Source: Epiperipatus broadwayi | Lineage: Eukaryota > Animalia > Onychophora | DNA: 64,000 bases | Direction of reading: 5' to 3' | NCBI GenBank assembly: GCA_028023455.1 | Contig: JAQFVV010000001.1 | Coordinates: 29,760,001 to 29,824,000 of the forward strand | Part shown: piece after piece, positions 5,971 through 59,105 of the stretch | Position numbering within the stretch: the first letter of the stretch is position 1 | Layout of the letters: each line of letters opens with the position of its first letter | Notes under the pieces: model-generated | The model's database searches: none | The model's input: only the letters and a program-made list of their open reading frames with translations | Told to the model about the DNA's origin: nothing | Program-made: the position numbers and the translations under genes

Positions 5971-8138
5971 TATGTATCACATTACAATATCAATTACCAT
6001 TATTTTTCTTAATTCAAGTAGTAACTCCAAAGTTTCTTGGTGATCCACTGTGGATTGAAATCAATGACTTGCTACCCTGATCTAGCTTTTGGTAACAATA
6101 TCACAAATTGACTAAAAGTTATGAATGTATTTGATTGCAAACTACAAGAATTATTGATGGTAGTTGAATCTGCGAAAAAATTGAATACTTTAAATAACCA
6201 GCACAATCAAAAATAAATAACAGAAAAGGCTGTAGTAATTGTTAGAAAAAGCTGCCAAAATTAAGATATTTTAAAGGTGCTAAACAGAAATTACAAAAGG
6301 TATTCTGAAAAAATAAAAAAACAATATCAAAAACAAAATTTACTGTGGCATTGGAAAAGCAAATAAGATCTTGAAAAAAAAAAAAAAAACAGCTATACTT
6401 TAGATTTGTAATATCAAAAGAAAATTCCAGCCAAGACATTTATGGAAAAATGCCAATGAATAGATTATAACAAATAAAAAAAAATTAAATATACAGGAAA
6501 CTAAACGACAAAGGTATGATTACTGAAAATGTCAGCATTATAGACACAAAAATTCAAATATTTTTCCTTATAAGGATAAAAAATTTTAATGCCATTTCAG
6601 CTGGACTACATTATTTTATAATTTAAGATTGGATATTTCAAATTCAATGCCAAAATCATCTTTACTTAAGTAAGTCCTTATGAATTTTTGATTTAAAACA
6701 TTATGCTTTCTCTTTATCTAGTAATAAAAATTTATTTATCATTTATAATATTACAATCACAATATCAGGAATATACTGCAATCTCATATATATATATGCT
6801 AAAGAAAACTCTATTTTTCTAAAATCTAATAAAAAATATGTTAGGACTTGTTTATTAGAAGTTACTTTTGTCATTATCTAGGCCAATCATTAATATCAAT
6901 ATTTATTATAATATTTATTACAATAGATAATTATATTTATTTATCAAATGATAATATTTTCACTCTCACAAACTCTTGTTCTCAATTTTAAAGTTGGGTG
7001 AAATCATTGCCAGATAAATGAGACCCTAAATTACACTCATTCCATTCTATATATTTCCAAATCAAAAATATATCATTTTTGTAAATACATCAAAGTTTAC
7101 TATTCCATGATGAGAAAAAAAAAAAAAAGCAATATAATAAAAACATGAAGATTATAGTTTAGTATGTAAGGCAAAATAAAAAATATATATATTGGATATT
7201 TTAAACCTTGTATCCACTCCCAACACACATTGATAATATAAAATTTAAAAAAGAGAATGTTTAAACTAGAACAATTCTTGATTGATTAATAAAACATTAA
7301 AATAATTGTTTTGAATTAATTTTAAATATTGATTAAAATTTGTTTAACCGGTATTCTGTTTTTACTCCTATAAATGTCAAGAATTGCTATTTCTTAATTA
7401 CTTTTCACTCTAATTTTAAAACAACTTCCTAATTAGAATACAAAATGCTATATATATATAAAATCAATATATTAATTTGGGAAAAGATCAGACTCTGATA
7501 GATCCCCCCCCCCCCACAATAAAAAACTTATGACAGAAATTCATGGTAATAGTATATATTTCATTTGTTTTTAAACAGATCTTTCTAATATATCTTACAA
7601 TTTATCTTTAAACCTACAATAGATAATTATTCTTTTTTCAAATATTTATTTGATAATCAATTATAAGAATTACCAAATGATCCTAACAATAAATAACTTT
7701 ATCAAAAAATTTTATGTGATTTTTTTAAATTAAAAGCCAGAATTTTAATTAATGATTTCATCATAACATATTGATTTTATTTAAAGTTATATGTTTAACT
7801 TACATAAGCAGCTCACTCACCAACATATTTCATTTTATCTATAACATTAATATATATATGTGAAGGTTTGTTTGTTTATTATTACCTTATAACTGACAAA
7901 TATTGCAGTAATCTTAATGAATCTTGCACAATTTTCTTTCTTTTTTGTGGAGAATTACTTAAAAAACTTTAATAGTAATAATAACAAGTCAGATGTCACA
8001 TGACTTATATATAGCTTGCACTTACAAATATGTAAAATTAAGAGCATGCTAATAGCTCTAAACAAGCTTTTTTTTTTTTTTTATTTATGATAAATGCTAC
8101 TACAAGAGAAGGCATTCAAATCATTTTTAACTTGGATT

Positions 8139-8194
8139 GTCCCCATCCCCAGACTGGTTTCGACCTATGGGTCTCTTCAGTGAGGAGTTGGGAC
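8139..8194 (-). ncRNA. Type I hammerhead ribozyme, copy 1 (stem III loop variant ACCAGT)
   Basis: Minus strand: gtcccaactcctca CTGAAGA GACC cata GGTC GAAA C ca G TC tggggatggggac. Predicted cut after position 8152. Confidence 0.8.
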
Positions 8195-8566
8195 ATTAGA
8201 TCTAAAAAACCAACTCAAGCAAAGCATTTATCTAAAAGATAATTGTTAGAAGAAGATCTGAAACTTTTAGACATCTACATGTCTTTAAAGTCAGCTCTCC
8301 AATTCAAAAAATCATATGGGCCTGAACTTAATTCAGATACTCCATATATTAGTAGGCTTAGCTCTTTAATTTAGCTAAAGCCACAACAGCAAAATAATAA
8401 TAGCAATAATAACAAGTCAGATGTCACATGACTTATATATAGCTTGCACTTACAAATATGTAAAATTAAGAGCGTGCTAATAGCTCTAAACAAGCTTTTT
8501 TTTTATATTTATTTATGATAAATGCTACTACAAGAGAAGGCATTCAAATCATTTTTATCTTGGATT

Positions 8567-8622
8567 GTCCCCATCCCCAGACCGGTTTCGACCTATGGGT
8601 CTCTTCAGTGAGGAGTTGGGAC
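8567..8622 (-). ncRNA. Type I hammerhead ribozyme, copy 2
   Basis: Intact core CUGAAGA...GAAA, stem II GACC/GGUC, palindromic stem III ACCGGU, GUC cleavage triplet (C17 = 8580), stem I UCCUCA/UGGGGA. Confidence 0.88.
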
Positions 8623-8860
8623 ATTAGATCTAAAAAACCAACTCAAGCAAAGCATTTATCTAAAAGATAATTGTTAGAAGAAGATCTGAAACTTTTAGAC
8701 ATCTACATGTCTTTAAAGTCAGCTCTCCAACTGAAAAAATCATATGGGCCTGAACTTAATTCAGATACTCCATATATTAGTAGGCTTAGCTCTTTAATTT
8801 AGCTAAAGCCACAACAGCAAAATAATAATAAATTTTTATTAAACGCTCACTATTATTTCA

Positions 8861-9017
8861 GTAATAGTTTTAACAAGGCTGTAAACCTTAGCAATGAGCG
8901 TCTGAAAAAATCGTCACTAGGGACCTCTGCATGTGTTTTAAAGACCTACAGAGGTCCCTAGTGACGATTTTTTCAGACGCTCATTGCTAAGGTTTACAGC
9001 CTTGTTAAAACTATTAC
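8861..9017. repeat. Perfect 69-bp inverted repeat with 19-nt loop
   Basis: 8861-8929 is the exact reverse complement of 8949-9017. It sits between hammerhead units 2 and 3. Confidence 0.95.
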
Positions 9018-9190
9018 CAAAATAATAATAGTAATAATAACAAGTCAGATGTCACATGACTTATATATAGCTTGCACTTACAAATATGTAAAATTAAGAG
9101 CGTGCTAATAGCTCTAAACAAGCTTTTTTTTTTTATTTATGATAAATGCTACTACAAGAGAAGGCATTCAAATCATTTTTATCTTGGATT

Positions 9191-9246
9191 GTCCCCATCC
9201 CCAGACCGGTTTCGACCTATGGGTCTCTTCAGTGAGGAGTTGGGAC
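9191..9246 (-). ncRNA. Type I hammerhead ribozyme, copy 3
   Basis: Same sequence as copy 2; C17 = 9204. Confidence 0.88.
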
Positions 9247-9488
9247 ATTAGATCTAAAAAACCAACTCAAGCAAAGCATTTATCTAAAAGATAATTGTTA
9301 GAAAGCCACAACAGCAAAATAATAATAGTAATAATAACAAGTCAGATGTCACATGACTTATATATAGCTTGCACTTACAAATATGTAAAATTAAGAGTGT
9401 GCTAATAGCTCTAAACAAGCTTTTTTTTTTTTATTTATGATAAATGCTACTACAAGAGAAGGCATTCAAATCATTTTTATCTTGGATT

Positions 9489-9540
9489 GTCCCCATCCCC
9501 AGACCGGTTTCGACCTATGGGTCTCTTCAGTGAGGAGTTG
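9489..9540 (-). ncRNA. Type I hammerhead ribozyme, copy 4, truncated at the inversion junction
   Basis: Core and proximal stem I are intact. The distal gtcc is lost where the sequence flips to the opposite strand at 9540. C17 = 9502. Confidence 0.8.
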
Positions 9541-9931
9541 AAACCGGTCTGGGGATGGGGACAATCCAAGATAAAAATGATTTGAATGCCTTCTCTTGTA
9601 GTAGCATTTATCATAAATAAAAAAAAAAAAGCTTGTTTAGAGCTATTAGCACGCTCTTAATTTTACATATTTGTAAGTGCAAGCTATATAAAAGTCATGT
9701 GACATCTGACTTGTTATTATTACTATTATTATTTTGCTGTTGTGGCTTTAGCTAAATTAAAGAGCTAAGCCTACTAATATATGGAGTATCTGAATTAAGT
9801 TCAGGCCCATATGATTTTTTCAGTTGGAGAGCTGACTTTAAAGACATGTAGATGTCTAAAAGTTTCAGATCTTCTTCTAACAATTATCTTTTAGATAAAT
9901 GCTTTGCTTGAGTTAGTTTTTTAGATCTAAT

Positions 9932-9987
9932 GTCCCAACTCCTCACTGAAGAGACCCATAGGTCGAAACCGGTCTGGGGATGGGGAC
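9932..9987 (+). ncRNA. Type I hammerhead ribozyme, copy 5 (inverted unit)
   Basis: CTGAAGA 9946-9952, GACC-cata-GGTC 9953-9964, GAAA 9965-9968, CCGGTC 9969-9974 (cut after 9974), stem I arms on both sides. Confidence 0.88.
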
Positions 9988-12859
9988 AATCCAAGATAAA
10001 AATGATTTAAAAACTTTAGTAATTTGTAATGTGTTAGAATTTGTAATGATATCATAAAAATGCAAAAAGAAGAGAGCACAGATTGATGTTGCAGCCTGCA
10101 GCCACATATTTAACTTGACTTGTAAGTGCAATATGAAAAAAAAAAAAAATCATATAAAAATTTCATAGTTTTTGAGATACTTCTGTTGATTTGCAATATA
10201 AAAATGCATCAAAATTGTTTTCATTTGCAGGGAAATATTACATAAATACATAAGCCATAGGAACAGCATTAGCATTTATGAACAATTTTTAGAATTTCAT
10301 TTTAAATAGATTTCTCCTGTGATAAATTGTTTTAAAATGGCTCAGAAATTTTAATATACGGGTATGGTATAAATGAAATTTAATTAACTTATCTGTTTCC
10401 AGAAAAACATAACAAACAGAGTATACACATAAACTTAATGTGAGATAAGCTACTGCTTACTAAAATTTTTTGATGGTAAATGGAGGTAACATTTTATTAT
10501 ACACATATATTTTAAATTAATTAAATTTTGTTTCAACCTTGTATTCAATTTGGCACTTGTAAGTAGAACATAAAAAAATATCAAGTTAAATTTCATAATA
10601 AAAAGTTACACTTTTTGCGATACTGCTGTTAATAACTCAGGGATTATTATTTACTATATAAAAATGTGTTGAAATTGTAACCATTTTCAAAAAAAAGCTG
10701 CAAGAACAGAATTATCATTTACCATCAGTTAAACTACTGATCTTGATCAACTTTTAGGATTTATTTTAAAAAGATTTGTCACATAATAAACAGTTTTAAA
10801 ATAGCTCAGAAATTTTAACATGTGAGTATGATATAAATGAAATTAAAAATGATCTATTCAAATTAAACACATTTTATTTGACATGCAACAGTATTTACAA
10901 ATATGCATTATAATAATCATTTTAATTGCTGTTAATAACTCATATATTATTATTTCATGTAAATATTAAATATATTTTAATAATCAACTATATTATATTC
11001 TTTTAAGATTTGCAATCAACAAGCAGATTAAATAATAGAGCAATAAAACAATCTATTATGTCTATCTATTATATATATAAATTTGAAAATTGGTCTGTTA
11101 TTTAAAATACTGCACCAACTTTGATGAATTTTGCATGATTTTCTTTCTTTTTTTTTAGATTTTTGCTTTATGGTATTTAATTGTTTTTAAAAAAAATTGT
11201 TAATTTTCTACTAATGCAAACAAAGTCATGAGAATAGTTAGTATGAGATAAAGCATTTTTTAAAACAACAAAAGTTTTGTCCCCCAAATCTTGTCTAAAT
11301 ACATACTATTTAATTTTTGTTCATTTCTATATATTTGTATTTACTTCTCTTCTGGCACACTTTAAAAAAAAATTACTTCTTTCTCAAAAATATTTACTAT
11401 CTTACTAATTCCATGTTATATTAATCCAATTTCTACCTCTCTTTAATAATCCTGTTTTCATATTTTTCCAGTTCTGAAAGTATATTATATATTTTTCTAA
11501 AACATCAAACTTTATCTTGACCAAAAAAAAAAAATATATATTTTTTTAAAAATGCAACTAAAAAGCATGTGAAATTGTTAAGTTATTATTGATTTTCAAA
11601 AAATAAAATATAATTAGAATACAATGGAGTTTTTATTTTTATATCACAATAATTTTTATAGATTTCTTCAACTGTCAATTCTGACAATATTTTACTTTAG
11701 AATTGTATTCCTTTTAAGAGAGACTTTATCTTAAATTATTATTTCTCTTTCATTTATTTTTAATCAAATTTTACATACTGTTTAATTTTAAACTTTAAAT
11801 TTTCCAATATATAATTTTTGTTTTTTGAAAATTTTTGTATTAAAATTTAACTTATCTGTAGTTTTAAAAATTCAATTGGAATAATTTTTTTTTTTAATTT
11901 CAATATTGACAAGATATTAAATAATATTTAAAATTAAAAAAATAGCAAGATAAAAAATAAATAAATTGAGATTGCAAATGAAATTAAAACTAAAACATGA
12001 CTTTATAGTTTATTTTATTTTTTAAAAAGTAGAAATATTTAAAAAAAGTCAATATATAAAAATAAAAAAATCTAATCAGATGAATGTACATTTTTCTATT
12101 ATAAATAATAAAGAGCAAAGGCAGTTAGTAACAGCACTCAATTTATAATCATTAAAGTATGGTCATTGAACTAGTTTGTATATATCTAATCAAAATGACT
12201 TGAATTCAAAACGTTATGATGTTAAAATGTTTTAAGACAATAGCCGGACAAGCATATATATAAAATAAGAGATTTAAAATGAATACAACATTGTAGACCA
12301 CATCCAAAATTTAAGAAAAGTAACATTAGAATTATTGATAATGAAAAGATACTTGACTCTATATGCATTTTATGGTTATATTGTCAATTACTGAAAGATA
12401 TTTATCAAAATGTAAAAGGTGTAATTAGATGATTCTACATAAAGTCAATGGGAGATCCCAGCAGTATGATTCCACTTCTCTATTTTATAGCAGTTTTATA
12501 ACACCTATTTTTAAATTAAAATGAAAAGCGAAAGAAATAAAGATAAATGTAGATTATATAAATCACAGAGATTTATAATTGAAGTGATTACTCACACAAA
12601 TAATATTTTCATAATTGCAGAAAATATTGAAAAAGCTATCACACAAAAGTGGAATTAAAGATAAATACAAAAGAAATATTTAATGACTTAGGAAAAAAAA
12701 CCTGAGTAATAATAAATTACAAGAAGCTACCAAATATAAATATCTTAATTAAATAAAACATACGGAAATATATTGGGCAAAAATAATTATAGAAACAAAT
12801 TTGGTATAAGAGCTTTTGATAGACATCATCATTTTCAACCATTATTAATCCACTGCGGA

Positions 12860-16330: not shown

Positions 16331-16780
16331 CAGGAGTTGGCAAACTATGGCTTGTGAGCTACATGCACTCTTTGATCCCAATCTCGTGATTCTTTTTATC
16401 ATAATAAACGTAAAGATATTTTTTATTTCCTTTTGTAATTTGTAAATAAATATTTTGATGACTTTAGAAAAAGAAAAATGCACTTTACAATGTTGTTTAT
16501 TGAATTCAGCCTTATTATAGCATAGTAATTATTTTATGATGAATGTTTAAATATTACAAATTTGTTAAAAAATCAAACTTTCAAAGTAATTTTTTGTTTT
16601 TGTTTGTTTATTTTTAAGAGAATTTTTATTTTTATTAATTTGTTCTATTAAAATAAATGTTCAAATATATATATCCACAGCCAATCTGAAATTCATATTT
16701 TTCATTCTTTCATTATTGGGGAGAGGAGGTAGATATTTAAACAAAATGACTCTTCATATTAAAAAGTTTGCCAAACCCTG
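16331..16780. mobile_element. Non-autonomous hAT element (MITE)
   Basis: TIRs caggagttggcaaact and the reverse complement of agtttgccaaaccctg. Degenerate 8-bp flanks tattagtc/cactagac (5/8 match). Confidence 0.7.
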
Positions 16781-16997
16781 CACTAGACTAACATAAAATA
16801 ATATTGTGACCATTATATAAATTAAATTACATAAAAAATAAACAAATAATTAATTGTCAAAGACATTTTAACAGTAATAATGTGTATGGTTAGCATTTTA
16901 AATGTATATTTTGGAAATAGAGCCTTTAAAAATCCTTACAGGACCAATTGCTTTTCGAAAAAGCTTTTCAAAAGAGAAAGAGAAGCTATTATTCACC

Positions 16998-19900
16998 TGT
17001 TGTGTGCTGGCTAGCTTGTAAATATTTCATTTAATGAAGTTGTAGATGTGTGTACAGGTTGATCAGTATAGGCAATGTTGAATCAATCCAAAAATAATAA
17101 ATGCAAAAAAGAAAAATTAGTTTACAGAAAAAAGCAACATACTAATTAGCATTTCAAGAGAATTTAACATTATGCAAATTAGCAATTGTATTAAATGCCT
17201 CTAGAATTTTTAATAAAGAAAAAAAAAAGAAATTAGATACTCTAAATAGAGTGAAAACTAATTATGCAGAGTAAACCAATATTAGCAGCGAAATTGAATT
17301 GCACTAAAAATCTAATCAGACTAACTCAAGATTGTATGTGAGCAGTAAGGTGCTTAATTAAATAGTAATTAAAATGACAGTTAAAATACTAGAATAAAAA
17401 AAAAACCCAGATATATGATGTATAGTTGTCTTCAGTTGTAAAGATATATGTATATATGAGTTATCTTCAGAGATATGAACTGTGATCAAGATGGTATTAT
17501 GTTCGACTAACAAATTGCCATTTGATCTACTAATATTATTGTTAATCAGAATAAAATAAACTCTTGAAATTATAAATAAACTTGGGCTGTTTGTTTATTT
17601 AAACAATTTACATATATTATCTGATTGCCATATTATAGTTGGCCCTGGATATATTATGTGGCACAGTTAGTGAGAAGAAAAGTACGCTTGTGAAACAGTA
17701 TATGATGCAGTTAAAATTGATTAACTGTAAAGATTATTACACAGTAGTCTTACAACCTGAAAGATTATCGATACATATTAGTGATTAGAATAACTCAAGA
17801 CATATATGCAGAACAATGTAACAACGACCTTCAATGTAAAAAAACTGGGCTAGTGGCAGATATACATAAATCATGTATAAAAACACATGCTCATGAATGG
17901 AATAATTGACAAGTTGAAAGTCACCATCAATTTATATGATCCAAAGTCGCTTAAAGAATTATTAATAAAATTAAATGTCAATGCTTATTTTAACCCAATA
18001 ACAGTAAAATTACATAACGCATTGTTTCTACAGTACGATGCAATCGTGCAATGAAACTGTACGTGAATACAAGTTAATACTACAGACTTAAGCAAAAGAT
18101 TGCGAATTTAGGGACTATTACATGAGTATAAATTAATACTACAGACTTTAGTAAAGAATAGCGAATTTAGGAACTATGTCGATGAAATGTTGTTGAACTA
18201 ATTATTATCAGACATCAGAGATGTGAAGTTTAGGCAGATATTATTGAGCGAGTCTACACTAAAGCATAAGGTTGCTATTGAGTGTGCTATAACCCATGAA
18301 GCCATTTTACAATACATAGAAGCCTTCAAAAATGTGACAGATTTAGATACTTCAGAATCCAGTGTAAATAGTGCCATGAAAGAATTTAATGCAGACCCAT
18401 CCTACTTCTTGTTATTGCTGTGGAAAAACAGGTCATTTTAAATCGTGTAAATTTAAAACAAAAAAATGTTTTAGCTGCAACATGACATATCATCTATCAA
18501 AGCTATGTAAAATAAATGACAAATGGGGATTTACTGGATAAAAAGTAAATCAAGGGGAGGAACATTTAAGAGGTTTACAACTAAGAAGTTGAAAAGAAGT
18601 GATGATATGCCTAATATGTTAAATGTAAAAGTCGATGGTCAAATGATAGAAATGGAGACGGACAATGGATTGGCAGATATATCATTGATATCACAAAAAA
18701 GATTGGACAATAATTCAGAAAAGAACACAAGTTAACATTGAGTATTAGCCCAATATTAGGGTGCAATATAGGGATTAAGATTAACATCGTAAAAAGAGTT
18801 AAGTTGGAAGCTGAAATTAGAAATAAATTTTCAAAACTTTTCAAAATGTAACACAGCAGGATTTAAGACAAAACCAAGACATCGAGCTACAACAAGTTGT
18901 GTACAGACAAAGAAAGGCCATGTTTGCTCTTAAGCTGAAAGTAAAAAAAAAAGCAATGAATGAATTGAAGAATAAAGTTATGCTTACAGCTATAAAAGTC
19001 CATCTGGTTTGCATCTATAGTAGCAGTACTAAAACTGGACGGAAATGTGAAAATATGAAGTTTACAATCAAATTACAGGTAATAAGAACATTAACAAAGG
19101 CACATGTCATGTATCTAACATGAAAGAAGAATTAGCATCTCTGCAAAAAAATAAACAGTTCACAAAGCTAGATTTAAAATCAGCATTTCACTGAATTCCA
19201 GCTACAAATAGAAAGGCCGAGATACTAATAATAAACATGCAAATGGGATTATTTAATTTTAATAGACTACCATACAGGATAACTATAACACCAAATATCT
19301 TCCAAGCAAAAATAGAGAATTTAATCATATTTAGATGACATACTAGTAATTGTTAAAAATGAAGCAGAATTAAGGAAAGATTATACATAGTTTGTGAGAA
19401 ATTACATAAATTTGGCACAAGATTAACTGCTGAAAAATGTATATGGTCGATGAGGGAAATCAAATTTCTAGGACATATTATTACAGAAAATGGGAAATAT
19501 CTAAACCCAGAGAGAGTCACAGCCATGAAAAATGATTAAAGACAACAAATGTTATATAATTACAAGAGTCAAGGTTTTCTTAAAGGGTAAATTACATGAG
19601 ACTACATTCCTTTAAGAGCTTCTAAAGAAAAACCAAAAACGAAAATGAGGAAAACCACAAGACCATGCTTTTTGAAAAATAAAAGAATTGATATTTTCTG
19701 AAAATTTACTAGTCCACTATAGTGAGCAACAAGAAATGACTATTACAATAGAAGCTTCTAAATTTGGAGTTGGAGCCATATTATCAGTGCTTTCTGAGAT
19801 GAACTTCCTGTTACTTATGCTTCAAGAACATTGTCTATGGCTAAGAAAAACTACTGCCAGTTAGACAAGGATGGTTTACCCATAGATTTTGCAGTGAAGA

Positions 19901-22040
19901 CGTTTCATCAATATATATATATGGGCACTCATTTAAAATGTATATTGACCACAGACCATTATTGGGAACATTTAGAAAAAGTAAGAAAACCTGGACCATG
20001 CCAATCAGCTAATGTTAAGATGGATAAACATATTAGCAACATATAACTATGAATTGTTCTATAGACCGGGAAAGCTGATAAAGCATATAGATGCTCTCTC
20101 TAAAACTCCAGACAAAAGTACATAAAAGTTGAGTGTCTGTGAAATTAATTACATGGATGTGATATAAAGTCCGAAATTTCTAACAGCAAAGCTGTAGCAG
20201 AGTGGGCTAAAAGAAATAAACAGTATAGTTATTTAAACAACCAAATAATTTAATTCCCACAAAGTCTGTCAACCTGCCATGAATGCATTCTTATGACAGA
20301 CAGTATAATGATTCCGCCTGAGGGAAGGAAAAGTGTACTACAGCTATTACACAATTACACAAAGGACACCTCTGGAATAGACAGTACGAAACAGCTTGCT
20401 CATTCATATATTTGGTAGCTAGAATTGAATAGTGATACTGAGCAGACAGAAATTGTCTAGTTTACCAACAAATAGCAAATTTATTCATTAAAATATTCCA
20501 ATTTTGGCTTGAAGCTTTGAGAAGATAGCAACAATTCCATTTAGACTATCCTGAGCCATTTCATGGATATATTTTTTAATAGTCATAGATGCGTATTCAA
20601 AGTGGATAATATACAGCCTAGTAAAAGATATAAGTATAAAAAGTATGATAAAAGTTTTAAACGAACTTTTCTCAACGCACAGATCTGTAAGCCATTGAAA
20701 CAGATAATGGCATGGGTTTCAACTTAGAAAAACTTAACTTTTTTGCTCCAAAGGGAATAAGGTATATATATTGACACCAGCTTATCAACCTCAGTCAAAT
20801 GAAACAGGGGAGAAGGCATCGGCTAGAAACTATGTTAAATAAACAGGAATATGCCGATATTTATGCAGCATTTACAACAGTGATATTTTATCAGCATTTC
20901 ACATTCAGTTCTGTTACAAAGAAAGCACCCATGGAATTATTAATGAAATGACATGAAAAAAACACACATTTATTTTAATTCCAGGCAAAGAAAAAAGGAA
21001 AGACATAGATTTTGAAAATGTTAAATTTAAAGTAAACCAAACTGTATGGATTAGATATAATTAAGAAAAAATAACTACCAGGAATGTCTGCACAAATGCA
21101 TGGAATAAAACTGGAAAACGAGTTTGATAACCATATAAAAGGGCAAACTCAAAAATTACAGGATATAATTACTGCTTCATATATGGCTAAAGGAAATGAC
21201 TGATGTTTCTGCCAGCACAGAGTTAGCAGTAGCAGATAGCTCTTCAGTTCAAAAAGCTATAGAGTTAGATGGTGAATAGAAAAAATAGAGCAGAGAAAAA
21301 AAAAAATGCATACCAAAAAAGTGACAAGAGTATTTGTTCTAAATAAAACTGCTTATTTCTAGAGTGAAGAGGAGGTATATCCCGGGCCAACTATAATATG
21401 GCAGCCAGATAATATGTAAAAAAAAAGTTTAAATAAACAAAAACAGAAGTATAATAATAATTTCAAGAGTTTATTTTATTCTAAATAACAATATTAACAG
21501 AGAGGATTAGTAGCTAAACTGGTGATTTGCTAGTTGAATACAATATTATTCTTGATCATGTAACAGTTCATATTTCTGTAAATAAGTAATAAACACATGT
21601 ATCTTTACAATTGTAGATAATTCCACATCATACATATATTTCTTTTAATTCCAGTATTGTAACTGTCATTTTAATTACTATTTAAGTAAGCACCTTACTG
21701 CTCACACCCAATCTTGAATTAGTCTAATTAGATTTTTACTGCTAATATTTTTTTTACTCTGCACATTTAGTTTTCATTCTATACTTTACTTAGAGCCTTT
21801 AACTTCCTTTTTCCTTCTTTTTATTATAAGTTCTGGAGGCATTTTATTACATTTTGCTAATTTTCAAGTTAGATTTTATTGAAATACAAATTAGCATGTT
21901 GCTTCTTGCTGTAACCTAATTTTCCTTTTCTGCATATTATTATTTCTAGAGTGAATCAACATTGCCTATACTGACCAACCTGTACACACATATACAACTT
22001 AATTAAATAAAATATTTACAAACCAGCCCATCACCAAATA
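16998..22040 (+). mobile_element. Decayed Ty3/Gypsy (Mag-like) element with INVERTED terminal repeats
   Basis: 16998-17653 is the reverse complement of 21376-22040 (about 80% identity by eye). PBS-like TGGCACAGTTAG at 17659, PPT agagtgaagaggagg at 21361-21375. Gag, protease, RT (FTKLDLKSAFH, YLDD at 19328-19339), RNase H (YASRTLS) and integrase (IHLDY, VIDAYSKW, TDNG) remnants lie in order on the + strand. CACC flanks both ends. Confidence 0.85.
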
Positions 22041-23329
22041 CACCAATCATAAGGTGGATGGTGAGAGGATTTTAGTCATGTCTGATTTTACTTCATTCTT
22101 TAACTATAGACTAAAAATTATGAGATGATTATTAAAAATAAATAAATTGTAAGCTCGTCTGAAATCTGAGAAAATTTCCAAATTCTATCTCTTTCAAAAT
22201 GAACTACAACTAATCATGTTGCTATTTAGAAGTGTTACCTTCTTCCATTTGAATCTTTTGTTTCCTAGTTTATTTTCTGTTTTTTTAAAGGCTGTACTCC
22301 CATCTAGAGAGTTTGTTATAGTTGCAGCCCCAAAAAGTTGTTCTCAGTTTTTCAAAAATGCTTTAACATTCTTTTAACTTACTTTATCTTAATCAGGCAA
22401 TCATTAAAAAACATTGGTTACTGTCTTTTGCATTTGATTGAAATGCACACACACACACACAAATTTTTTGAAAATTCATGATTAAGACTATGATGTACTT
22501 CAGTATTTATGAAATGGTTACTTTGATTTGCCACTTGACTACTTGTAATTTTTTAAAACAAATGAATGTAGGAGCCTTAAATACATTAAGTTTCAAATGG
22601 ATATAAACTTGTACTAAGATATGAGAAATCATGGAATTATGTATTAGCTTTGGTTATAAAGCAAATCATAATCTTTATTTAAATGTCATATGATAATCAT
22701 AAATTATGTGTCACTACATTCCATCCTATAAAAATTTCTATGAAATAAATATTTCATAGTACCATAATTCATTTTAAAAATATTTTAAATCTCTTTGATA
22801 TAGATAATATCACAATCATAAAAGTTGGCAATCTATGTTTTTATTTTAGTTATAAATACCTTAATTAATGAGATCTATACAAGTAAAATAAATACAACAA
22901 AACATTAATTCCTCAAGAGACGTGATGCCTATAATAAAATAATTGGTAAATAGGAAGTTCACCAGAATTTAATTGTCAGAAATATGATTCAATATTCCCT
23001 GCTTTATTGTTTCATGTTTTTTAGAATAGTTCTGAAATCTCAGAAGAAAATTTGGCTTTTAACGAATCAACACAATTAACAAAAATGCTATTGTTGATGT
23101 TTAGATGACTATAAGGATCCTCAATATGATAACATCACATGCTAATAAAAAAAATTCAATGAATAAGTACTAATAAACTGACTCAAAAATTACTTTTGCA
23201 TTTAAGAAAGATTTAATCTTGATATAAATCACACACAATTCCAAATCACACTAATCTATTATGAGTTTTTTTAAGAGACTAACAGTAAAGGGTATATAGT
23301 TTTAAGCAATTACTTTAGATATTCACGTG

Positions 23330-26449: not shown

Positions 26450-26957
26450 GCAATAATGATTAATTTGTATATGTGGAAGTATATATTTGTTTAGATATCC
26501 AGATGGTTCTATGATTGGCAGAGATCAAGATCACAATTAAAGTTTATTCACTGCACTTTATTTACACAGATTAAATTAGTTTATAGTTGGTCTGTACACT
26601 CATAGTATCAAATGGCCATAGCATTGATAATGATCAGCATGAATCAGTATCCCAGCATTTATTTTATGAGATACTTTCACACATAAGTATGTGCATGCAG
26701 ATGGTTGTTTTATATTATGCCCTGGAGTTTAGCATTGGCTAGATATTGGCCTACATCTTGATAATGAACCTTTTTTTGATTGTCACAAGGTTATGTAACT
26801 TATAATTGTTGTAACTACTTATTTTATACCAATTCTCTCAGGCTCATTTTATATTTTTTTGATGACTATTCATTGATAATGTTAATTGTGATGATTGATA
26901 TTTTATGGGGATGATGATGCCACACCTCATATTACCCCTTCATTAGTTCTGTTACAG
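26450..26957. repeat. Dispersed LTR-like repeat family, diverged copy
   Basis: atcaaatggccatagcattgataatgatcagcatg aligns with actaaatggccagagcactgatgatgatcatcatg at about 485. Ends in gttaca. Confidence 0.55.
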
Positions 26958-29900
26958 ATGACTATAAGAATCCTCAATATGTTGACATCACTTGATAACA
27001 AAAAAAATTCAATGAATAAGTGCTAGTAAACTGACTCAAAAACTTATGTATTTAAGAAAGAGCTCATTTTGATATAAAACATACAATTGTGAATTCACTC
27101 ATCTATCATGAGTCTTTTTAAGAGATTAACACTAAATGGTATATAGTTTTAAGCAATTACTTTAGATATTCATTGAAAGAGTATAATATAAAGAATTCTT
27201 TCAAAGTAGCAACAATATTTAATTTTTTTAACAATGAATTTTTTTAATGCATTATGGTATATATATATATATACACATTTAGATTATTCTGAAATTATTC
27301 CTATGTTAAACTATTTAATTTATTGGAGTGATCTTAGTTTTAAACAAATAAGCTCAAAAAGGCTCAAGAACTAATCATAAATTAGATGAAATACTTTTAT
27401 TAGCTGCTATTTGAAAATATAATGATGTTAATCTTAAATGATTGAAATGAAATTGTATGAAAAGTTATTTTGAAAGATTAATTAAAATAGTGAGCTAGCT
27501 CTATAAACAAGATGACTATATCATTTTAACTTCTTTTTATAAATGAGAAATATAAAGACATTTTGGAAATATATAATTGGGCATATCCTGTGAATAATAG
27601 CCAGGTTACAAGAAAATTACATATTTTATGACACATAGCAAACAAATGAAAACACGTAGTAGTTTTTAATAATTGTTATAAAGTAAAACTGTTCTTGTAT
27701 CAATCACAATCAATTATTATTAAATGCCTATTGTGCATAGACAAAAGTGTTTTAATGTAATATTGTAAGGTTACGAGGGAATCATCCTTCTAATAATTCA
27801 AAGTTGACTTCCAACTCTCACTAAACTGTAACAGAACAATGCTAGTGATTATTTATTGATCAAAAATTTTCCGATAAAATCAATCCTAAAAAAAGTTTAT
27901 AAATTTGGAAGTACTTGGTCAGATTTTTTTGTTATTAGTTAAAATATCATTTATCAGAATATATCAAGAGTTTGCAGCTAATGAAGTAATGGAATAATTA
28001 TATAATCTGCATTGCTATATTTTTTAATAATAATATCAACTACTAATACTATATAATAGTAAAGATTTCTTATTTGAATTATTATGTCATTTTGCATTAT
28101 GAAAGTTAAGAAATCTGCAACTGAAAATTATTAGTAAGCAATTTTATCTTTATATGAGTTATTATTATCTGATAATCTCATTATTACCTATTACTAATAT
28201 AACATATTTTGCATAAATAGTAGCTTCAAAATGCTGAATTAATAATTTTTAATAAAATTTCTAATAGTAATAGTATTAAAATCTTATTCTGTCATATGAT
28301 TATAATTAATATTCAATTTTATCAAAACACTTTGTTGTTAAAAAAAAGATATGAATATATAAAAAGTAGTTTCTAGTTTTAATAATTTTCTTTCATGGCA
28401 TTAAAGAAACAAAATGAATTGTAAAACTGAATTGTTTTATTCTAGGATCTAGTGTCAATTTGAGATAGAATTGTGTAACAATAAATCAGGTAGATCACTT
28501 GGTTGTCTGTTAAATCAAGTATTTGACTTCTAATAATGTACTAACTAGCAATTAAAAAATATATTTTGCATTTTAACACTAAGACTGAAAATTATGTGTA
28601 GACAAATATTTATGCAAGAGATAATTTCAAACAGAACAACATATTTAGACACCAAGCAGTTATACAAAAGATAAAGCAGTTATATTAAGAAAAATCATTT
28701 TACTGATTTTGCTATCAAATTGCAAAAGCATATCTAAAAAGTTTTGGTTAAAATCCCTCTGTGCATGAGATTAGATATAGGTGAAGTAGATGTTTTAAAA
28801 ATCCTTGTGGAATAGTGACTGGTTTGAATTCAGCCAAATGAATCTTGAAATTTTTTTCTGGTCATAAACAGTCTTGGGATTTTTCTTTCATATAGATGAC
28901 TTATAGTCAACTAAGCTATACATTCAATAATGGTCAGAAATGGTTATTTAGCTATTAAGATTTGTGTTAATTTATATTTTTCAGATAAATGTTGATGGGT
29001 AAGCAGATGATTGTTTTATATTATGCCCTGGAGTTTAGCATTGGCTAGATATTGGTCCACAGCTTGATATTGAACCTTTTTTAGATTATCACAAGGTTAT
29101 GTAACTTATACCAATTCTCTCAGGCTCATTATATATTTTTTGATGACTATTCATTGATAATGTTAATTGAGATGATTGATATTTTATGGGGATGATGATG
29201 ATGCCACACCTCATATTACCCCTTCATTTGTTCTGTTACAGATGACTATAAGAATCCTCAATATGTTGGCATCATTTGATAAGAAAAGAAATTCAATGAA
29301 TATGTGCTAGTAAACTGACTCAAAAACTTTTGTATTTAAGAAAGAGCTCATCTTGATATAAAACATTGTGAATTCACTCATCTATTATGAGTCTTTTTAA
29401 GAGATTAACACTAAATGGTATATAGTTTTAAGCAATTACTTTAGATATTCATTGAAAGAGTATAATATAAAGAATTCTTTCAAAGTAGCAACAATATTTA
29501 ATTTTTTTAACAATGGATTTTTTTTTAATGCATTACGGTATATATACATTTAATTTATTAGAGTGACCTTAGTTTTAAACAAATATGGCCAGAAAAGCTG
29601 AAGAACTAATTATAAATTAGATGAAATACTTTTATTAGCTGTTATTTGAAAATATAATGATTTTAATCTTAGATGATTGAAATGAAATTGTATAAAAAGT
29701 TATTTTGAAAGGTTAATTAACATAGCGAGATAGCTCTATAAACAAGATGATTATATCATTTTAACTTCTTTTTATAAATGAGAAACATAAATACATTTTG
29801 AAAATACATAATTGGACATATCCTGCCAATAATAGCCAGGTTACAAGAAAATTACATATTTTATGACATATAGCAAACAAATGAAAACAGTATTTAGATT

Positions 29901-31209
29901 AAGCTGATGTAGTCGTTTTTAATGACTGTTATAAAGTAAGACTGTTCTTGCATCAATCACAATCAATTATTAGTTAAATGCCTATTGTGCATAGACAAAG
30001 TGTTTTGATGTAATATTGTAAGATTACGACTGAATCATCCTTCTAATAATTCAAAGTTGACTTCCAACTCTCACTAAACTGTAACAGAACAATGTTAGTG
30101 AATATTTATTGATAAAAATTTTTCCAATAAAATCAATCCTAAAAAAAGTTTATAAATTTGGAAGGATTCTCGGTCAAATTTTTTTTTTATTAGTCAAAAT
30201 ATCATTTATCAGAATAAATCAAAAGTTTGTAGCTATTGAAATAATGGAATAATTATATAATCTGCATTCCTATACTTTTTAATAATAATATCAACTACCA
30301 TTACTGTATACTAGTAAAGATTTCTTATTTGAATTATTATGCCATTTTGCATTTGAAATTTAAGATATCTGCAACTGAATATTATTATTAACAAATTTTA
30401 TCTTTATATGAGTTATTATTATCTGATAATCTTATTATTACCTATTACTAATATAACATATTTTGCATAGATAGTAGCTTCAAAATGCTTAATTAATAAT
30501 TTTTAATAAAATTTCTAATAGTAATAGTGTTAAAATCTTATTCTGTTATATGATTATAATTAATATTCAATTTTATCAAAACATTTTGTTGCTAAAAGAA
30601 AGATATGAGTATATAAAATGTAGTTTCTAGTTTTAATAATTTTCTTTCATGACATTAAAGAAACAAAATCAATTATAAAACTGAATTGTTTTATTCTAGG
30701 ATCTAGTGTCAATTTGAAATAGAATTGTGTAACAATAAATCAGGTAGAGTACTGACTTCTAATAATGTACTAACTAGCAATTAAAAAAAAATATATTTTG
30801 CATTTTAACACTAAGACTGAAAATTATGTGCAGACAAATACATATACAAGCGATAATTTCAAACAGAACAATATATTTAGACACCAAGCAGTTATATTAA
30901 GAAAAATCATTTTACTGATTTTGCTATCAAATTGCAAAAGCATATCTAAAATGTTTTGGTTAAAATACCTCTGTGCATGAGATTAGATATAGGTGAAGTA
31001 TATGTTTTAAAGATCCTTGTGTAATAGTGATTGGTTTGAATTCAGCCAAATGAATCTTGACATTTTTTTCTGGCCATAAACAATCTTGGAATTTTTCTTT
31101 CATATAGATGACTTATAGTCAACTAAGCTATACATTCAATAATGGTCAGTTATGGTTATTTAGCTATTAAGATTTGTGTTAATTTATATTTGTCAGATGA
31201 ATGTTAATG
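26697..31209. repeat. Tandem segmental duplication, about 2.3-kb unit x2
   Basis: gcagat(g/a)gttgttttatattatgccctggagtttagc starts at both 26697 and 29003 (period 2306). Colinear throughout, roughly 90% identity by eye, with small indels. Confidence 0.95.
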
Positions 31210-37050: not shown

Positions 37051-37603
37051 TGCTGTGTCCACAGGGAGTTTTAACTCAGCTGTGGTAGCATAAAGAAATA
37101 AATATACAACTAGGTAAAAGTAATAAAATATTAGTTTAATTATTAATACAATAGACATAAACAGCCTGCATACACGTATAACTAAGGTTGATAACACATC
37201 CTTTAATTAGAATTTGCAATGAATATAAATATATAATTCAGCGTTTAGCAAAAAGCACATTATACGTAGTTATTAGTTTACTGAACTTAGAACTGTCTTA
37301 TTCTTTCTCATATAGTCTACTTACGTAGAAATAGAAGTAAGAACTTCAGGAATGATTCCCAATTTAGTATTTCTCTTTAGTAGGTTCTATAACTGTAACC
37401 ATAATTTCAGTTTGTTAAATAAAAGACCGTTGTCTTATTAACCTTTTTAGAACAGACACGTAACTATAGAAACCAAACCTTATTACCGCACAGAATCCAC
37501 TAGAAGCTCTTCAATCGACTTCTCATTTAATTAATACAGTTAATTTACTTTAACTTTATTAAAGTACGTATATATATATATATATATATGTTTATATATT
37601 ACA
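37051..37603 (-). repeat. 3' LTR (553 bp)
   Basis: Follows the polypurine tract agagtaggaggagatatg on the minus strand and matches the 5' LTR. Confidence 0.95.
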
Positions 37604-37639
37604 CATATCTCCTCCTACTCTAGAAAATAATCACTAAAT

Positions 37640-40600
37640 TTAGCTGGTTTCTTCCGGATTCTTTGACTTCGTGGAATACAGCTTTCGGGAATAGGATCAA
37701 TCATTTTACTAGAGTCATCTGGGTCAGGTTCTGCATTGTCATCTTTTGATTTGCAGGTAATAATTTCTCTTGTGTTAAGGGAGGCAGATTATCAAACTCT
37801 GCTCTAGGCAATAAGTCCCATTGGGTTTCCTTTTTAACAGATTGTTTTGTCCATGTTGGTCATAGTAAATCTTTTTCTCAAATGATTAATATGACGTCTT
37901 ATAAGTAATCCATTATCAAGTTTTATTAATCGTATAACTTCAGATATATTATTGGTAATAATCCCTGATATCCAAATCCTTTTTAAATAATCACGAACCC
38001 ATACATTTTCGCCAATCATGAATCTTTGGGGAGTAGAACAATGGGATTCTATTGTTTTCTTTGCTTTTGGTAGTAATTTAGACAGATGTGTCCGACATGT
38101 TCTATTAAACAACAACTCTGCTGGTGATCTTCCATTAATCGCAATAGGCAGGAAATGTTGATAAAACATGATATCAACTAGTGCTTCATCCATGTTAAGT
38201 GCTTTACTTTTCTTCAAACTTGATTTCAAATTTTGAACTGCCTTTTCTGCTAGTCCATTTGAAGCTGGGTGATAAGCTGGCGTTAGAATGTGATGAATAC
38301 CTTTTTCTGCCAAATATGATTCAAAATCAGTAGACGTAAATGCAGTGCCATTATCAGACACTAATGTCTGTGGATAACCATGGGTTGCAAAAATCTCTTG
38401 TAAAGCTTTAATCATGCATCTAGTACTCGTAGTACTTACAATTCTATACTTGACCCATTTACTGTAAGAGTCTATTGCTACTAAAATTAAATATCCATTT
38501 ACAGGTCCAGCAAAATCTATATGTATTCTTTCCCAGGGTGTTTTAGCCTCCACCCAGGGTACTCGGCAAATTTGCTCCAACCTGACAATCGTGACACAAT
38601 TTTACAGTTCTTTCAATATCTTGATCAATACACGGCCACCAAACATAGGAACGTGCAAGAGCTTTCATGCGGATTATGCCTGGGTGACCAGCATGCAACA
38701 TTTTTAACACTTGTTGGCGTCCCTCTAGTGGTAAAAATACACGATCATTCATAACTATGCAATCATTACAAATAGATAGTGAATGACGTGCATTCCAGAT
38801 TGCTATAGTTACATAGTTTGGCCGATTATTTGGCCATCCATTTCGTATCCAGATTTTTTAATTGTCGGCAACCAGGATCTTTTACAGTCCATTTAGAAAT
38901 TTTTACACTATCTAGATTATCAGTTAATTTAATAATTTCCAATAAATTAACTTCAACAAATTTTTGTGGTATACTATCTCTAGCTGGCAAACATGACAAA
39001 GCATCAGCATGTGCTATCTCCTTTCTGGGTTTGTAGCATAGTTCATAGTCATAGGCAGCTAAAATGTTAATCCATCTGAGAAACCTTTGACTAACTTGCT
39101 CTGGTATTTTTTTATTTTTTCCAAAAATTCCAAGCAAAGGACGATGATCCGTGAATAATTTAAAACTGCGACCATAAATATATTGATGGAACTTTTTGAT
39201 CGCAAATATAATAGCCAAAGCCTCTTTGTCAAACTGACTGTAGTTTTTTTTAGCTGAAGATAATGTTCTGGAAGCATATGCTATGGGTCTTTCTTGTCCA
39301 GCTATGAGATGTGAGATTACTGCCCCTACTCCATGATCTGAAGCATCTGTTGTAATCACTACTTCCTGATCACTACAATAATGCATTAATAGGGTTTCGG
39401 ATGCCAGTAGATCTTTTGCTTTTTCAAAAGCAACTCTATGTTCATTCAACCATTTCCAGCGTTGTCCTTTTCTCAGTAAATCATACAGAGGAGTCAAAAA
39501 ATGAGCTTTACCACAAAGATAATTTTCGAAAAAATTCAATAATCCAAAGAAAGCTTGTAAATCCTTAACATTTTTTGGTGTAGCAGCTTTTTTCACATCT
39601 CTTACTTTTTCTGGATTAGTATATTTTCCCTGTCTATTTATTATGTGACCCAGAAATTTAATTTCTGGAGTGGACCAGATACATTTTCCTGCATTTATGG
39701 TAGCACCAATTTAGTTTAGTTTTGCACAAACTGCCATTACACGGTTTTCCAATTCTTCTTCAGATTGGGCAGAGATCAGTATATCATCTAGATATGGGAT
39801 TACACCATTCATAATTCTGAAACAATCTATCCATTTTAGCTTGGAAAATATTAGGTGCTATAGTAATCCCAAAAGGTAGCCTATTACACTTAAACAGTCC
39901 AACATGAGTAGTGAGTGTTAACAGATTTGCAGTTTTTTCAGTAACTGGAATTTGATGGAAAGCAGATTTCAGATCCATTTTTGCAAAGAATGAGGCCTTT
40001 TGTAATGATGCTAATATCTCAGGCACACTTGGTACTGGATAAGCACTTTTATTAGTGTACTTGTTAACAGTAATTTGGTAATCTCCACAAAAACGAATTG
40101 TTCCATCTGGTTTTACAATTACTACTACAGGAGTAGCCCATAATGAGTCCTCCACCAGTGACAAGACACCTTTTGCTACCAAATCTGCAATAGTTTCTTC
40201 TACCTTTGGTCTCAGAGCAAATGGAATTTTTCGAGGTCTGCAAACTATAGGCTGTGCATCATTAGTCAAATCTACATCCACTGGTCTTGTTTTTAATACA
40301 GCGATGTCTTTGTTGAATAGCTGTGGGAACTTATTTCGAACCTCAGTCTCTAATTTAAATTTTTTAATGATCTTTATACAAATGCCTAAAGGATGAAACC
40401 AATTTCTACCCAGTAAAGGGCTAATGTCTCTTTTAACAATGTATAATGGCAAAACTTTCTGTTTCTGATTTAATTTTACCAGAACACAAACCTTTCCACA
40501 TAGTTGTATCTTATTACCATTTACATCTGTAGCTATAACATTTGTTTTACACAATTTTAACTTCTGCTGAGCTCTAGCATTTATTTGGTTCCAATCTTTC

Positions 40601-41501
40601 AAAGATAATACAGACAATCCGGCACCACTGTCCACTTCCATGGTGACTTTGCTTTCACAAATGGATACTGCTAGTGTAATTTGATTATCTGCAGTGTTCT
40701 TCAAAGAGTTAATTGTGGATTTCTTAACAGCTGCCTTCTGTCCAGATTTAAAGTCTGGGCATTGATTTTCTTTACTACCCTTTTTGCATACACGGGCCAG
40801 ATGTCCTTTTCCACCACAGACGCGACAATTTTTCTTCTTATATCTGCAGCCCTTCTTAGTATGTCCAGCAATTCCACAACAGTAGCAAATCAGTTCATTT
40901 GGTGTAGTCCTGATAGCAACTTTTTCTATATTAGCTTTAAAAACGCTGGTGGTAGGATTTATTTCTTTACCGATTGTCTGGAATTCTGATGCATTAGCTA
41001 TTGTCAGCTCATGTGCTACACATTTCTCCACAGCTGTCCTAAATGTGATATCACCTTCACTTAATAGCATTTTCCTCAAATGGTGATCTGTCATACCATA
41101 TAGAAATTGATCTAACAGTGTGTCTTCCAAATCAATAAATTCACAATTCCTAGCACATCCTCGCAAGGCCAGATTGTATTCCTGACATGTCTCCCAAGGT
41201 AACTGCTTTCTCATTCGGAATCTTAAGCGAGCTATCCTCTTCGTGACTGCTGGATGGAAATATGTAGTTAGTTTTCCTACTAATTCACTATATGCACATC
41301 TTCAGGAATCTTTGTATCACATAGCTGCTTGGCAATTTGCACAACATCAGTTCCCGCATAAAATAATAAAGTTGAGACTTTTAACTTCTCATCTTCTACC
41401 TTACTAAGACACATAAAGCGGTCCAACTGCTCCACATATAAATTCCATCCTGAAGGATTACTCACATCAAACTCTCGTAAGTTTTGTGTGGGAATGGCCA
41501 T
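37640..41501 (-). pseudogene. gag-pol polyprotein pseudogene of the Mag-like element
   Basis: ORF pieces at 41280-41501 (gag N-terminus), 39784-41214 (CCHC x2, protease VDSGAG, RT), 38826-39596 (RNase H TDASDHGVG), 38543-38752 (HHCC) and 37834-38580 (integrase IHIDFAGP, SDNG, GLAEK). YLDD (39783-39794) is out of frame. In-frame TAA at 39711-39713, plus frameshifts near 41290, 39800, 38855 and 38555. Confidence 0.93.
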
Positions 41502-41590
41502 GTTTCTTGATTATGTCTACCAGTATTAAATTTCCACTAATACAATTTAGATTACAATCCTGGAATCTGTATTTTATCCTAAATATGAGG

Positions 41591-41608
41591 AACCTGTCGA
41601 CTGCGCCA
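41591..41608 (-). promoter_or_regulatory. Primer-binding site, probably tRNA-Ser
   Basis: TGGCGCAGTCGACAGGTT lies 2 nt after the LTR end. It is complementary to a serine-tRNA-type 3' end (...CGACTGCG-CCA, from memory of insect tRNA-Ser). Confidence 0.75.
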
Positions 41609-41610
41609 TC

Positions 41611-42150
41611 TGCACTGTCCACAGGGAGTTTTAACTCAGCTGTGGTAGCATAAAGAAATAAATATAAAACTAGGTAAAAGTAATAAAATATTAGTTTAAT
41701 TATTAATACAATAGACATAAACAGGCCTGCATACATGTATAACTAAGGTTGATAACACATCCTTTAATTAGAATTTGCAATGAATATAAATATATAATTC
41801 AGCGTTTAGCAAAAAGCACATTATACGTAGTTATTAGTTTACTGAACTTAGAACTGTCTTATTCTTTCTCAGTCTACTTACGTAGAAATAGTAGTAAGAA
41901 CTTCAGGAATGATTCCCAATTTAGTATTTCTCTTTAGTAGGTTCTATAACTGTAACCATAATTTCAGTTTGTTAAATAAAAGACCGCTGTCTTATTAATC
42001 TTTTTAGAACAGATGCGTAACTATAGAAACCAAACCTTATTACCGCGCAGAATCCACTAGAAGCTCTTCAATCGACTTCTCGTTTAATTAATACAGTTAA
42101 TTTACTTTAACTTTATTAAAGTATGTATATATATATGTTTATATATTACA
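41611..42150 (-). repeat. 5' LTR (540 bp)
   Basis: Begins TGTAAT and ends GTGCA on the minus strand. 12 substitutions and 3 indels relative to the 3' LTR. Confidence 0.95.
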
Positions 42151-57578: not shown

Positions 57579-57960
57579 TTTACTATCAAATTAGAACAAG
57601 AATAAAATGGTATTCTTAAATATTCTCATGCCAACTTCATGGAAAAACCAAAACTGTTGATTGCAGAAAAGCTAATAATATAATGTCACTTTTTAATGTT
57701 TCTATTATGACTGATAATTTACTAGCAAATTAGAACAAAAATAAAATGGGTATTCTTAGATATTCTCATGACAACTTCATGGAAAAATTAAAACTATTGA
57801 CTGCAGAAAAGCTAATAATATAATGTCACTTTTTAATGTTTCTATTATGACTGATTAACAGAAACACAAAAAGTGGAATTATATACAGAGCAAAAGAAGT
57901 TTGTTCAAAAATCTAACATAACACAAACTCTCATGAAAAATGGTTATCTATTAGCTATCA
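57579..57960 (+). mobile_element. Penelope-like RT/thumb fragment containing a ~139-bp tandem duplication
   Basis: Duplicated tttactatcaaattagaac...gactgat at about 57579 and about 57718. It is followed by cacaaaaagtggaatt...agagcaaaagaagtttgttc...aatggttatc, matching the HK.GII.RA..ICS...NGY pattern. Confidence 0.5.
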
Positions 57961-58368: not shown

Positions 58369-59105
58369 TAATCCCATAAGCCAATCTAGTGTGATAATCC
58401 ATATTCAGAAGATCACATCACTCATTAATTTTGCCTTTAAATAAAAATAGAATAAAAAAAAGGATCTTTATTGTAACAGGTCTACCCCTATTTTAACGTA
58501 TTAATATTTATTCTTTCCTTTAATCTAACTAGTGATGGAAATATAGTCATGATCAAACCTGTGTGTAACCAAATTCTTGGTTCACACCATTTAGTAATAT
58601 AAATTTAATATTCATTTTATTAATCACTTAAAAAATAATGGGAGATACAATACAGATAACGGATCTACCCCAAATTGTATTAACTAATATTATCAAAATG
58701 AATAAGCCTACTACCAATGTCTCAGATAACTGTGACTAATCCCATAAGCCAATCTAGTGTGATAATCCATATTCAGAAGATCACGTCACTCATTACTTTT
58801 GCCTTTAAAGAAAAAGGATAAAAAAAGAATCTTTATTGTAAACAGGCCTATCCCTATTTTAACGTATAAATATTTATTCTTTCCTTTAATCTAACTAGTG
58901 ATGGAAATATAGTCACAATCAAACCTGTGTGTAACCAAATTCTTGGTTCACACCATTTAGTGATATAAATTTAATATTCATTTTATTAATCACTTAAAAA
59001 ATAATGGGAGATACAATAGAGATAATGGATCTACCTCAAATTGTATTAATTAATATTATCAAAATGAATAAGCCTACTACCAATGTCTCAGATAACTGTG
59101 ACTAA
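58369..59105. repeat. Tandem duplication, 368-bp unit x2
   Basis: taatcccataagccaatctagtgtg starts at both 58369 and 58737; near-identical to gataactgtgactaa. Confidence 0.93.

Follow-up and report, generated by a model that had tools for sequence, protein, structure and literature searches.

How can a retrotransposon with gag and pol come to lie between two long terminal repeats (LTRs) that face each other rather than point the same way? The question is raised by a 5-kb unit at 16998-22039, read on the + strand, in a 64,000-nucleotide stretch of the onychophoran Epiperipatus broadwayi that we call the window (29,760,001-29,824,000 of contig JAQFVV010000001.1, our C1, in an AT-rich assembly of 5.6 Gb). 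We conclude that the unit is a clean fossil left by a rare accident in a Ty3/Gypsy family that was otherwise ordinary and is now extinct, and that it has no function. Its 3' LTR is reversed as a whole, its family has direct LTRs, and the positions at which the reversed segment begins and ends suggest that the accident befell the element's complementary DNA (cDNA) before integration.

Structure of the inverted LTR pair

The first-pass annotation of the window had described a repeat of about 660 bp lying head to head at the positions that LTRs occupy, and this arrangement is real. A repeat search returns four collinear inverted blocks that pair 17009-17653 with 21376-22028. In a global alignment of 16998-17656 with the reverse complement of 21376-22039, the two arms are identical at 535 of 632 positions (84.7%), with 59 gap columns and a Kimura two-parameter distance (K2P) of 0.173, and they are collinear over the whole length of the LTR. 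The unit and its borders comprise the following features.

16993-16997, unstranded: left copy of a probable target-site duplication (TSD), TCACC, matching 22040-22044 at four of five positions
16998-17656, + strand: 5' LTR in normal orientation, 659 bp, starting TGTTGTG and ending GGATATATTA; the same LTR is abundant genome-wide
17657-17676, + strand: spacer TG (2 nt) and primer-binding site (PBS) TGGCACAGTTAG, the PBS at 17659-17670, as read from the sequence; the layout is the same in copies L017, L019, L021 and L023
21362-21378, + strand: polypurine tract (PPT) and normal interior end, GAGTGAAGAGGAGGTAT; the same tract is followed by a direct LTR start in copies L007, L009 and L030
21376-22039, - strand: 3' LTR, reversed, collinear with the left LTR at full length, with its U5 (unique 5' region) end short by 3-6 nt and its U3 (unique 3' region) end outward
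22040-22044, unstranded: right copy of the probable TSD, ACACC, as read from the sequence at the projected boundary

The left arm stands in the normal relation to the PBS and carries TATA-like and AATAAA motifs within its last 200 nt; on these features we read it as the correctly oriented arm, the right LTR alone being reversed. Its TGTTGTG terminus is seen at 16998, as had been reported. The PBS, whose sequence TGGCACAGTTAG we take to be reminiscent of the 3' end of tRNA-Ser, does adjoin the repeat, but not at the 5-nt distance first described: similarity between the arms ends at 17653, whereas comparison with other copies places the true LTR end at 17656, which leaves a 2-nt spacer, TG.

At the inner junction, the purine run GAAGAGGAGG ends at 21375 and the interior is intact to its usual last bases, GGTAT, after which the reversed LTR continues from ...ATCCCGGG (from 21379). 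The trinucleotide TAT (21376-21378) is common to the normal interior end and the reversed LTR end, and so constitutes microhomology. Compared with a perfect flip, the junction is short of 6 nt; put differently, the LTR end has lost 3 nt and there is a TAT/ATA overlap. At the outer junction, alignment with other copies projects the start of the reversed LTR to 22039. Over ~20 nt at its outer end the right arm is scrambled, with two occurrences of CACCAA, which leaves an uncertainty of 1-6 nt in the boundary. The right end proposed earlier lay close to 22040; our best reading is 22039 within that uncertainty.

The flanks are suggestive of insertion of the entire unit. In a Hamming scan the TSD of the family is 5 bp long, with matches at five of five positions around solo LTRs L005 and L049 and at four of five around L004, L014 and L008. 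The CACC that had been noted outside both ends is the core of the TCACC/ACACC match, but the family duplicates 5 bp rather than 4. A match of at least four in five at that spacing occurs by chance at 3.4% of window positions, per boundary tried, so for this copy the TSD is no more than suggestive. The two sequences that flank the right arm itself, the GGTAT side and ACACC, do not match each other, which argues against the reversed LTR as a separate solo-LTR insertion.

The family elsewhere in the genome

The LTR family is abundant and old: a first look gave 611 candidates, those scored are 70-78% identical, and many are solo LTRs. In most copies the LTR starts TGTTGTATAC... or TATTGTATAC... 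and ends ...GGATATATTA; after 5' LTRs come TG and a PBS of the TGG type, and interiors end ...GAGGAGGTAT directly before an LTR start. These short terminal motifs served only to find LTR ends; the comparison involved neither a consensus nor a repaired frame or reconstructed element.

A first set of loci contained five 3' and five 5' junctions, all direct. Among 29 loci fetched with an interior 3' end, a direct LTR follows downstream in full at 21 and in part at two; five have no LTR within 1.5 kb, and one (L065) is odd. In total, direct orientation was seen at about 24 junctions of interior and 3' LTR and at about 10 of LTR and PBS. LTR pairs on one strand, separated by 3-8 kb, were found on contigs C5, C396, C12707 and C6198, and further arrangements that are normal by their coordinates on C6351, C217, C9, C12431, C188, C6223 and C12407. 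A query centred on the junction between the PPT and the reversed LTR matched 39 other loci, none of them across that junction. The family replicates with direct LTRs, and the copy at 16998-22039 is unique among the loci checked. Direct LTRs are expected of Ty3/Gypsy elements and are present in the family, though not in this copy; because its family has them, the copy is a rearranged Ty3/Gypsy member and not a different kind of element.

The odd locus has a structure of its own. L065 (G000:C69:2522475-2526038; L065:181-2516) holds two family copies tail to tail around a single LTR, in the order interior end, PPT and direct LTR, followed by the reverse complement of the 3' part of a second interior. 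Its junction is imprecise: ~35 nt are gone from the end of the LTR and ~18 nt from the end of the second interior and its PPT. The two interiors are only 76.6% alike. Seen from the other strand, an interior end stands against a reversed LTR end, which is the junction type of the copy at 16998-22039. L065 may derive from a snap-back cDNA or from two insertions, tail to tail, accompanied by a deletion.

Junctions in the sequencing reads

Reads came from four sequencing runs of one sample, probably the assembled individual, and de Bruijn contigs derived from them were compared with the assembly. All four junctions of the unit are present in these contigs.

Contigs 16751-17364 and 16751-17390, unstranded: flank/LTR junction, read-derived
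Contig 17525-18260, unstranded: LTR/PBS junction, read-derived
Contig 21026-21405, unstranded: PPT/reversed LTR junction, read-derived, reaching 27-30 nt inside the reversed LTR
Contig 21922-22400, unstranded: reversed LTR/flank junction, read-derived

The junction contigs show 0-4 differences from the assembly at a depth of about 30 per run, which is the depth of the single-copy flank, and no alternative joint with good support was present among the read-derived contigs. A read joint from 16841 to 22130 was considered as an empty allele and dismissed, its sides being only 20 nt long and within repeated words.

A decayed gag-pol interior

The window contains a second element, whose open reading frames (ORFs) served as queries for the interior of the inverted-LTR copy.

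37056-42150, - strand: Ty3/Gypsy element, younger and better preserved, whose LTRs are direct, 535-548 bp long, of the form TG...CA and 95% identical, with PBS TGGCGCAGTCGACAGG, a PPT and the TSD ACTTT

Its ORFs of 476, 256 and 248 amino acids (aa) carry RVT_1, RNase H (RT_RNaseH) and rve, with pol split in pieces. In tblastn searches with these ORFs, remnants of gag, protease (PR), reverse transcriptase (RT), RNase H (RH) and integrase (IN) lie collinearly in that order on the + strand of the copy, at 27-55% identity.

18060-18177, + strand: two tandem 59-nt units, leader/gag-proximal, 83% identical to each other
18121-18538, + strand: gag remnant, broken by stops, with two CCHC zinc knuckles at 18380-18538 in translation; tblastn 18121-18511, E 3e-11
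18741-18842, + strand: protease-region remnant; tblastn E 5e-7, with 38 aa aligned at 55% identity
19051-19536, + strand: reverse-transcriptase remnant; weak Pfam RVT_1 on two pieces; tblastn 19069-19323, 55% over 85 aa, E 8e-23
19577-20164, + strand: RNase H remnant; Pfam RT_RNaseH E 8.6e-9, with RT_RNaseH_2 E 6.9e-6 on a neighbouring piece; tblastn E 3e-24
20505-20948, + strand: DDE integrase remnant; a 47-aa piece scores E 0.0044 for Pfam rve, short of the curated cutoff; tblastn 20505-20942, E 8e-12

For the integrase, the tblastn query was the ORF of the 37056-42150 element that bears rve at E 4.8e-14. The number of 59-nt units seems to vary among copies, as BLAST pieces suggest. No frame in the interior exceeds 98 codons between stops, and no ORF started by ATG, GTG or TTG is longer than 77 aa. 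Translation, Pfam and tblastn gave no sign of an inversion within the interior, and Pfam searches of the interior pieces between stops found no recombinase family other than rve. By the order PR-RT-RNase H-integrase, the DDE integrase, and the presence of a PBS and a PPT, the copy is identifiable from its sequence as a Ty3/Gypsy LTR retrotransposon.

The homology between this interior and the element at 37-42 kb, on which the first-pass annotation had remarked, holds at the protein level, where the matches are collinear, but does not extend to the LTRs, which were compared and showed no homology. As Ty3/Gypsy elements, the two share a CCHC gag, PR-RT-RH-IN order, a DDE integrase, a PBS 2 nt past the LTR, a PPT and a 5-bp TSD (a probable one in the inverted-LTR copy). 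They differ in that the copy at 16998-22039 has a reversed 3' LTR, is older (K2P 0.17) and degraded, and belongs to an unrelated LTR family whose LTRs end in TA, not CA.

The copy is dead, ancient, fully degraded and non-functional. An arm-to-arm K2P of 0.17 would correspond to tens of millions of years at an assumed neutral rate of 1-3e-9 per site per year. A copy on contig C55 seemed closer to the right arm (87% over 200 nt), but this closeness was gone on comparison of whole LTRs, the left arm being more decayed in that region.

When was the LTR reversed?

The boundaries of the reversed segment lie 0-6 nt from natural ends of replication intermediates, namely the PPT/U3 border and the ends of U5 and of U3. 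In the reverse transcription of LTR elements, plus-strand strong-stop DNA has its 5' end where the PPT primer has its 3' end, at the PPT/U3 border; the U3 end is the one that integrase processes. Random chromosomal breaks would hit two such positions in an element of 5 kb with negligible probability, and we therefore favour an accident to the cDNA before integration. Of the histories considered, the most likely, which we hold to be somewhat more probable than not, is that integrase inserted an aberrant cDNA terminating in U3 at either side.

Such a cDNA would arise if the strand due to run from the PPT into U3 were instead joined to a plus-sense copy of the LTR, or copied it, in reverse, starting at the U5 end of that copy and finishing at its PPT-defined U3 end. 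Two routes can be envisaged. First, a plus strand ending at the PPT might switch template, by means of 3-nt microhomology, onto displaced plus-strand strong-stop DNA and copy this to its PPT-defined 5' end. Second, the LTR duplex, held by the minus strand alone at the PPT nick, might be rejoined backwards by end-joining or by one-ended self-integration. Either route would yield a linear cDNA with a U3 terminus at each end, and integrase, which normally handles U3 ends, would join both to the target with the usual 5-bp duplication. The inserted copy could presumably not pass through a further replication cycle, because its 3' R (repeat region) and polyadenylation signal would be backwards, and such an inability to be copied again would fit its uniqueness.

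Several observations count against this account, or temper it. First, no sequence feature separates an accident before integration from an exact flip after it, since the TSD would be kept in both. Second, the TSD itself is only a four-in-five match beside a scrambled right terminus, with a boundary uncertain by 1-6 nt and the chance rate of 3.4% given above. Third, the arms are 82-85% alike against 76-82% to unrelated copies, that is, no closer. In the LTR tree, which is star-like, they are sisters with a support of 0.61 and a negligible shared branch, so phylogeny cannot demonstrate their common origin in one event; a star-like tree is what is expected for an old burst. Fourth, the genome holds no paralogous empty site, the flanks (the proximal 200 nt of the left one and the whole of the right one) being unique in it. 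Finally, the contigs that cross 21376 extend 27-30 nt into the reversed LTR, just short of the 31-letter rule applied to junctions, because the words that follow are common to other copies, and every read comes from one sample, probably the assembled one.

The closest competitor to the aberrant cDNA, which we nonetheless regard as rather unlikely, places the reversal in the chromosome: a normal integration with direct LTRs would have been followed by excision of the 3' LTR and its rejoining backwards, through double-strand breaks or replication-based rearrangement at short AT-rich terminal inverted repeats or microhomology. An aberrant strand-transfer product and a later flip had both been put forward in the first-pass annotation, and both survive, with the former preferred. 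A flip in place would keep the TSD outside the unit, and it fits with the TAT/ATA microhomology and the loss of 3-6 nt at the inner junction; the scrambled outer terminus of ~20 nt, with its short CACCAA duplication, could be a repair scar, although in arms ~17% diverged the scrambling may be plain decay. It would, however, require two breaks, each 0-6 nt from an LTR boundary, in a 5-kb element. We know of no mechanism that targets LTR boundary positions in chromosomal DNA, which weighs against a flip, and the terminal inverted repeat of the LTR amounts to only about 6 of 10 nt. In favour of a flip, recombination was what the authors proposed for an inverted LTR in a guppy endogenous retrovirus (ERV) (PMC5210030).

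Much less probable is a history of two or more independent events, in which a copy lacking its 3' LTR came to lie beside an oppositely oriented solo LTR, for example by nested insertion and deletions. The arms are indeed no more alike than unrelated copies, solo LTRs of this family are very common, and L065 shows that two copies can lie tail to tail with a single shared LTR, if with an imprecise junction. Yet the reversed LTR would have had to start 0-6 nt from the PPT end and the original 3' LTR to be removed exactly; to the right of 22040 there is neither a remnant of a direct LTR nor a second interior; and the right flank matches the flank left of the 5' LTR at four of five positions, and not the other side of the reversed LTR. 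The related proposal that the repeat is an unrelated element inserted twice draws no support from the junction and family evidence.

An LTR placed backwards by the assembler is highly improbable. Assemblers do err at repeats and the reads available are from one sample, but contigs from four runs carry all four junctions at close identity and even depth, with no rival joint, and the arms cannot be confused with each other because they differ by ~15%; the misassembled inversion that had been contemplated earlier is therefore unsupported. Least credible of all is a Gypsy lineage that normally carries inverted terminal repeats and propagates with gag-pol in a DIRS-like or Ginger-like manner, since it has in its favour the structure of one copy only and is refuted, on the test that the first-pass annotation itself had named, by the ~24 3' and ~10 5' direct junctions of the family, the absence of the inverted junction from the 39 other loci, the presence in the interior of a DDE integrase and no tyrosine recombinase, and a transcript that would presumably have no usable 3' R for strand transfer.

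Relation to known systems

The first-pass annotation had named no described case of such an element, a position that is too strong in view of two precedents. A foamy-like ERV of the guppy, PrERV-1, has an inverted 5' LTR (PMC5210030), and about 1-3% of integrated proviruses of HIV-1, a human immunodeficiency virus, in one survey held inversions, which were listed among reverse-transcription defects (PMC9278108). Like the present copy, these are one-off, defective integrated copies of elements that normally have direct LTRs, and they are attributed to recombination or reverse-transcription errors. The vertebrate retroviral cases are young, whereas the copy described here is an ancient Ty3/Gypsy element in which a whole LTR is reversed at the PPT/U3, U5 and U3 boundaries within a probable TSD.

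Literature searches on inverted LTRs as such yielded papers on DIRS only. DIRS elements combine inverted repeats with a tyrosine recombinase (PMC3950715, PMC7192593). They resemble the present copy as retroelements with inverted terminal repeats at both ends, but differ in their tyrosine recombinase, in an internal complementary region and in having inverted repeats in all copies; the unit at 16998-22039 has a DDE integrase, a probable TSD and direct-LTR relatives. Ginger and GingerRoot elements have terminal inverted repeats (TIRs) and a Gypsy-type integrase, and no gag, RT or RNase H (PMC6839031). The likeness here lies in the inverted termini, the Gypsy-type DDE integrase and, probably, the short TSD. 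Ginger elements also lack PR, and their TIRs are family-wide, whereas our copy retains remnants of a full gag-pol and has inverted arms in one copy only.

Implications

The modest value of this locus lies in its cleanness, with breakpoints at the PPT/U3 border and the LTR ends and a probable TSD around the unit. If its origin as an aberrant cDNA is correct, it would be in vivo evidence for the ability of a Gypsy integrase to insert cDNA that ends in U3 at either side. A broader and more doubtful proposition, which we offer tentatively, is that the copy belongs to a class that recurs in this genome, in which cDNAs with a reversed LTR, broken at replication-defined positions, are inserted by integrase through two U3 ends. 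Were that so, integrase-competent gag-pol units bounded by TIRs would arise regularly; such a TIR-bounded, integrase-competent geometry is the proposed starting point of integrase-derived DNA transposons. A recurrent class might also preserve, as a natural archive, the spectrum of reverse-transcription errors in a genome of invertebrate type. The copy at 16998-22039 itself shows no sign of remobilisation.

Other features of the window

A short high-copy repeat, possibly a short interspersed nuclear element (SINE), lies at 16600-16800, some 200 nt left of the insertion; it has 686 first-look candidates in the genome, of ~100-200 nt at ~70-83% identity. Three further regions are repetitive. A dense array of ~428-nt units, direct and inverted and up to 99% identical, occupies 7949-10011. 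At 26689-31185, blocks 91-99% identical form a tandem duplication whose period is about 2.25 kb, with a related 173-nt piece at 23057-23229. Finally, 58369-59105 and 57604-57855 contain short tandem duplications (90-96% identical) whose periods are about 366 nt and 140 nt.

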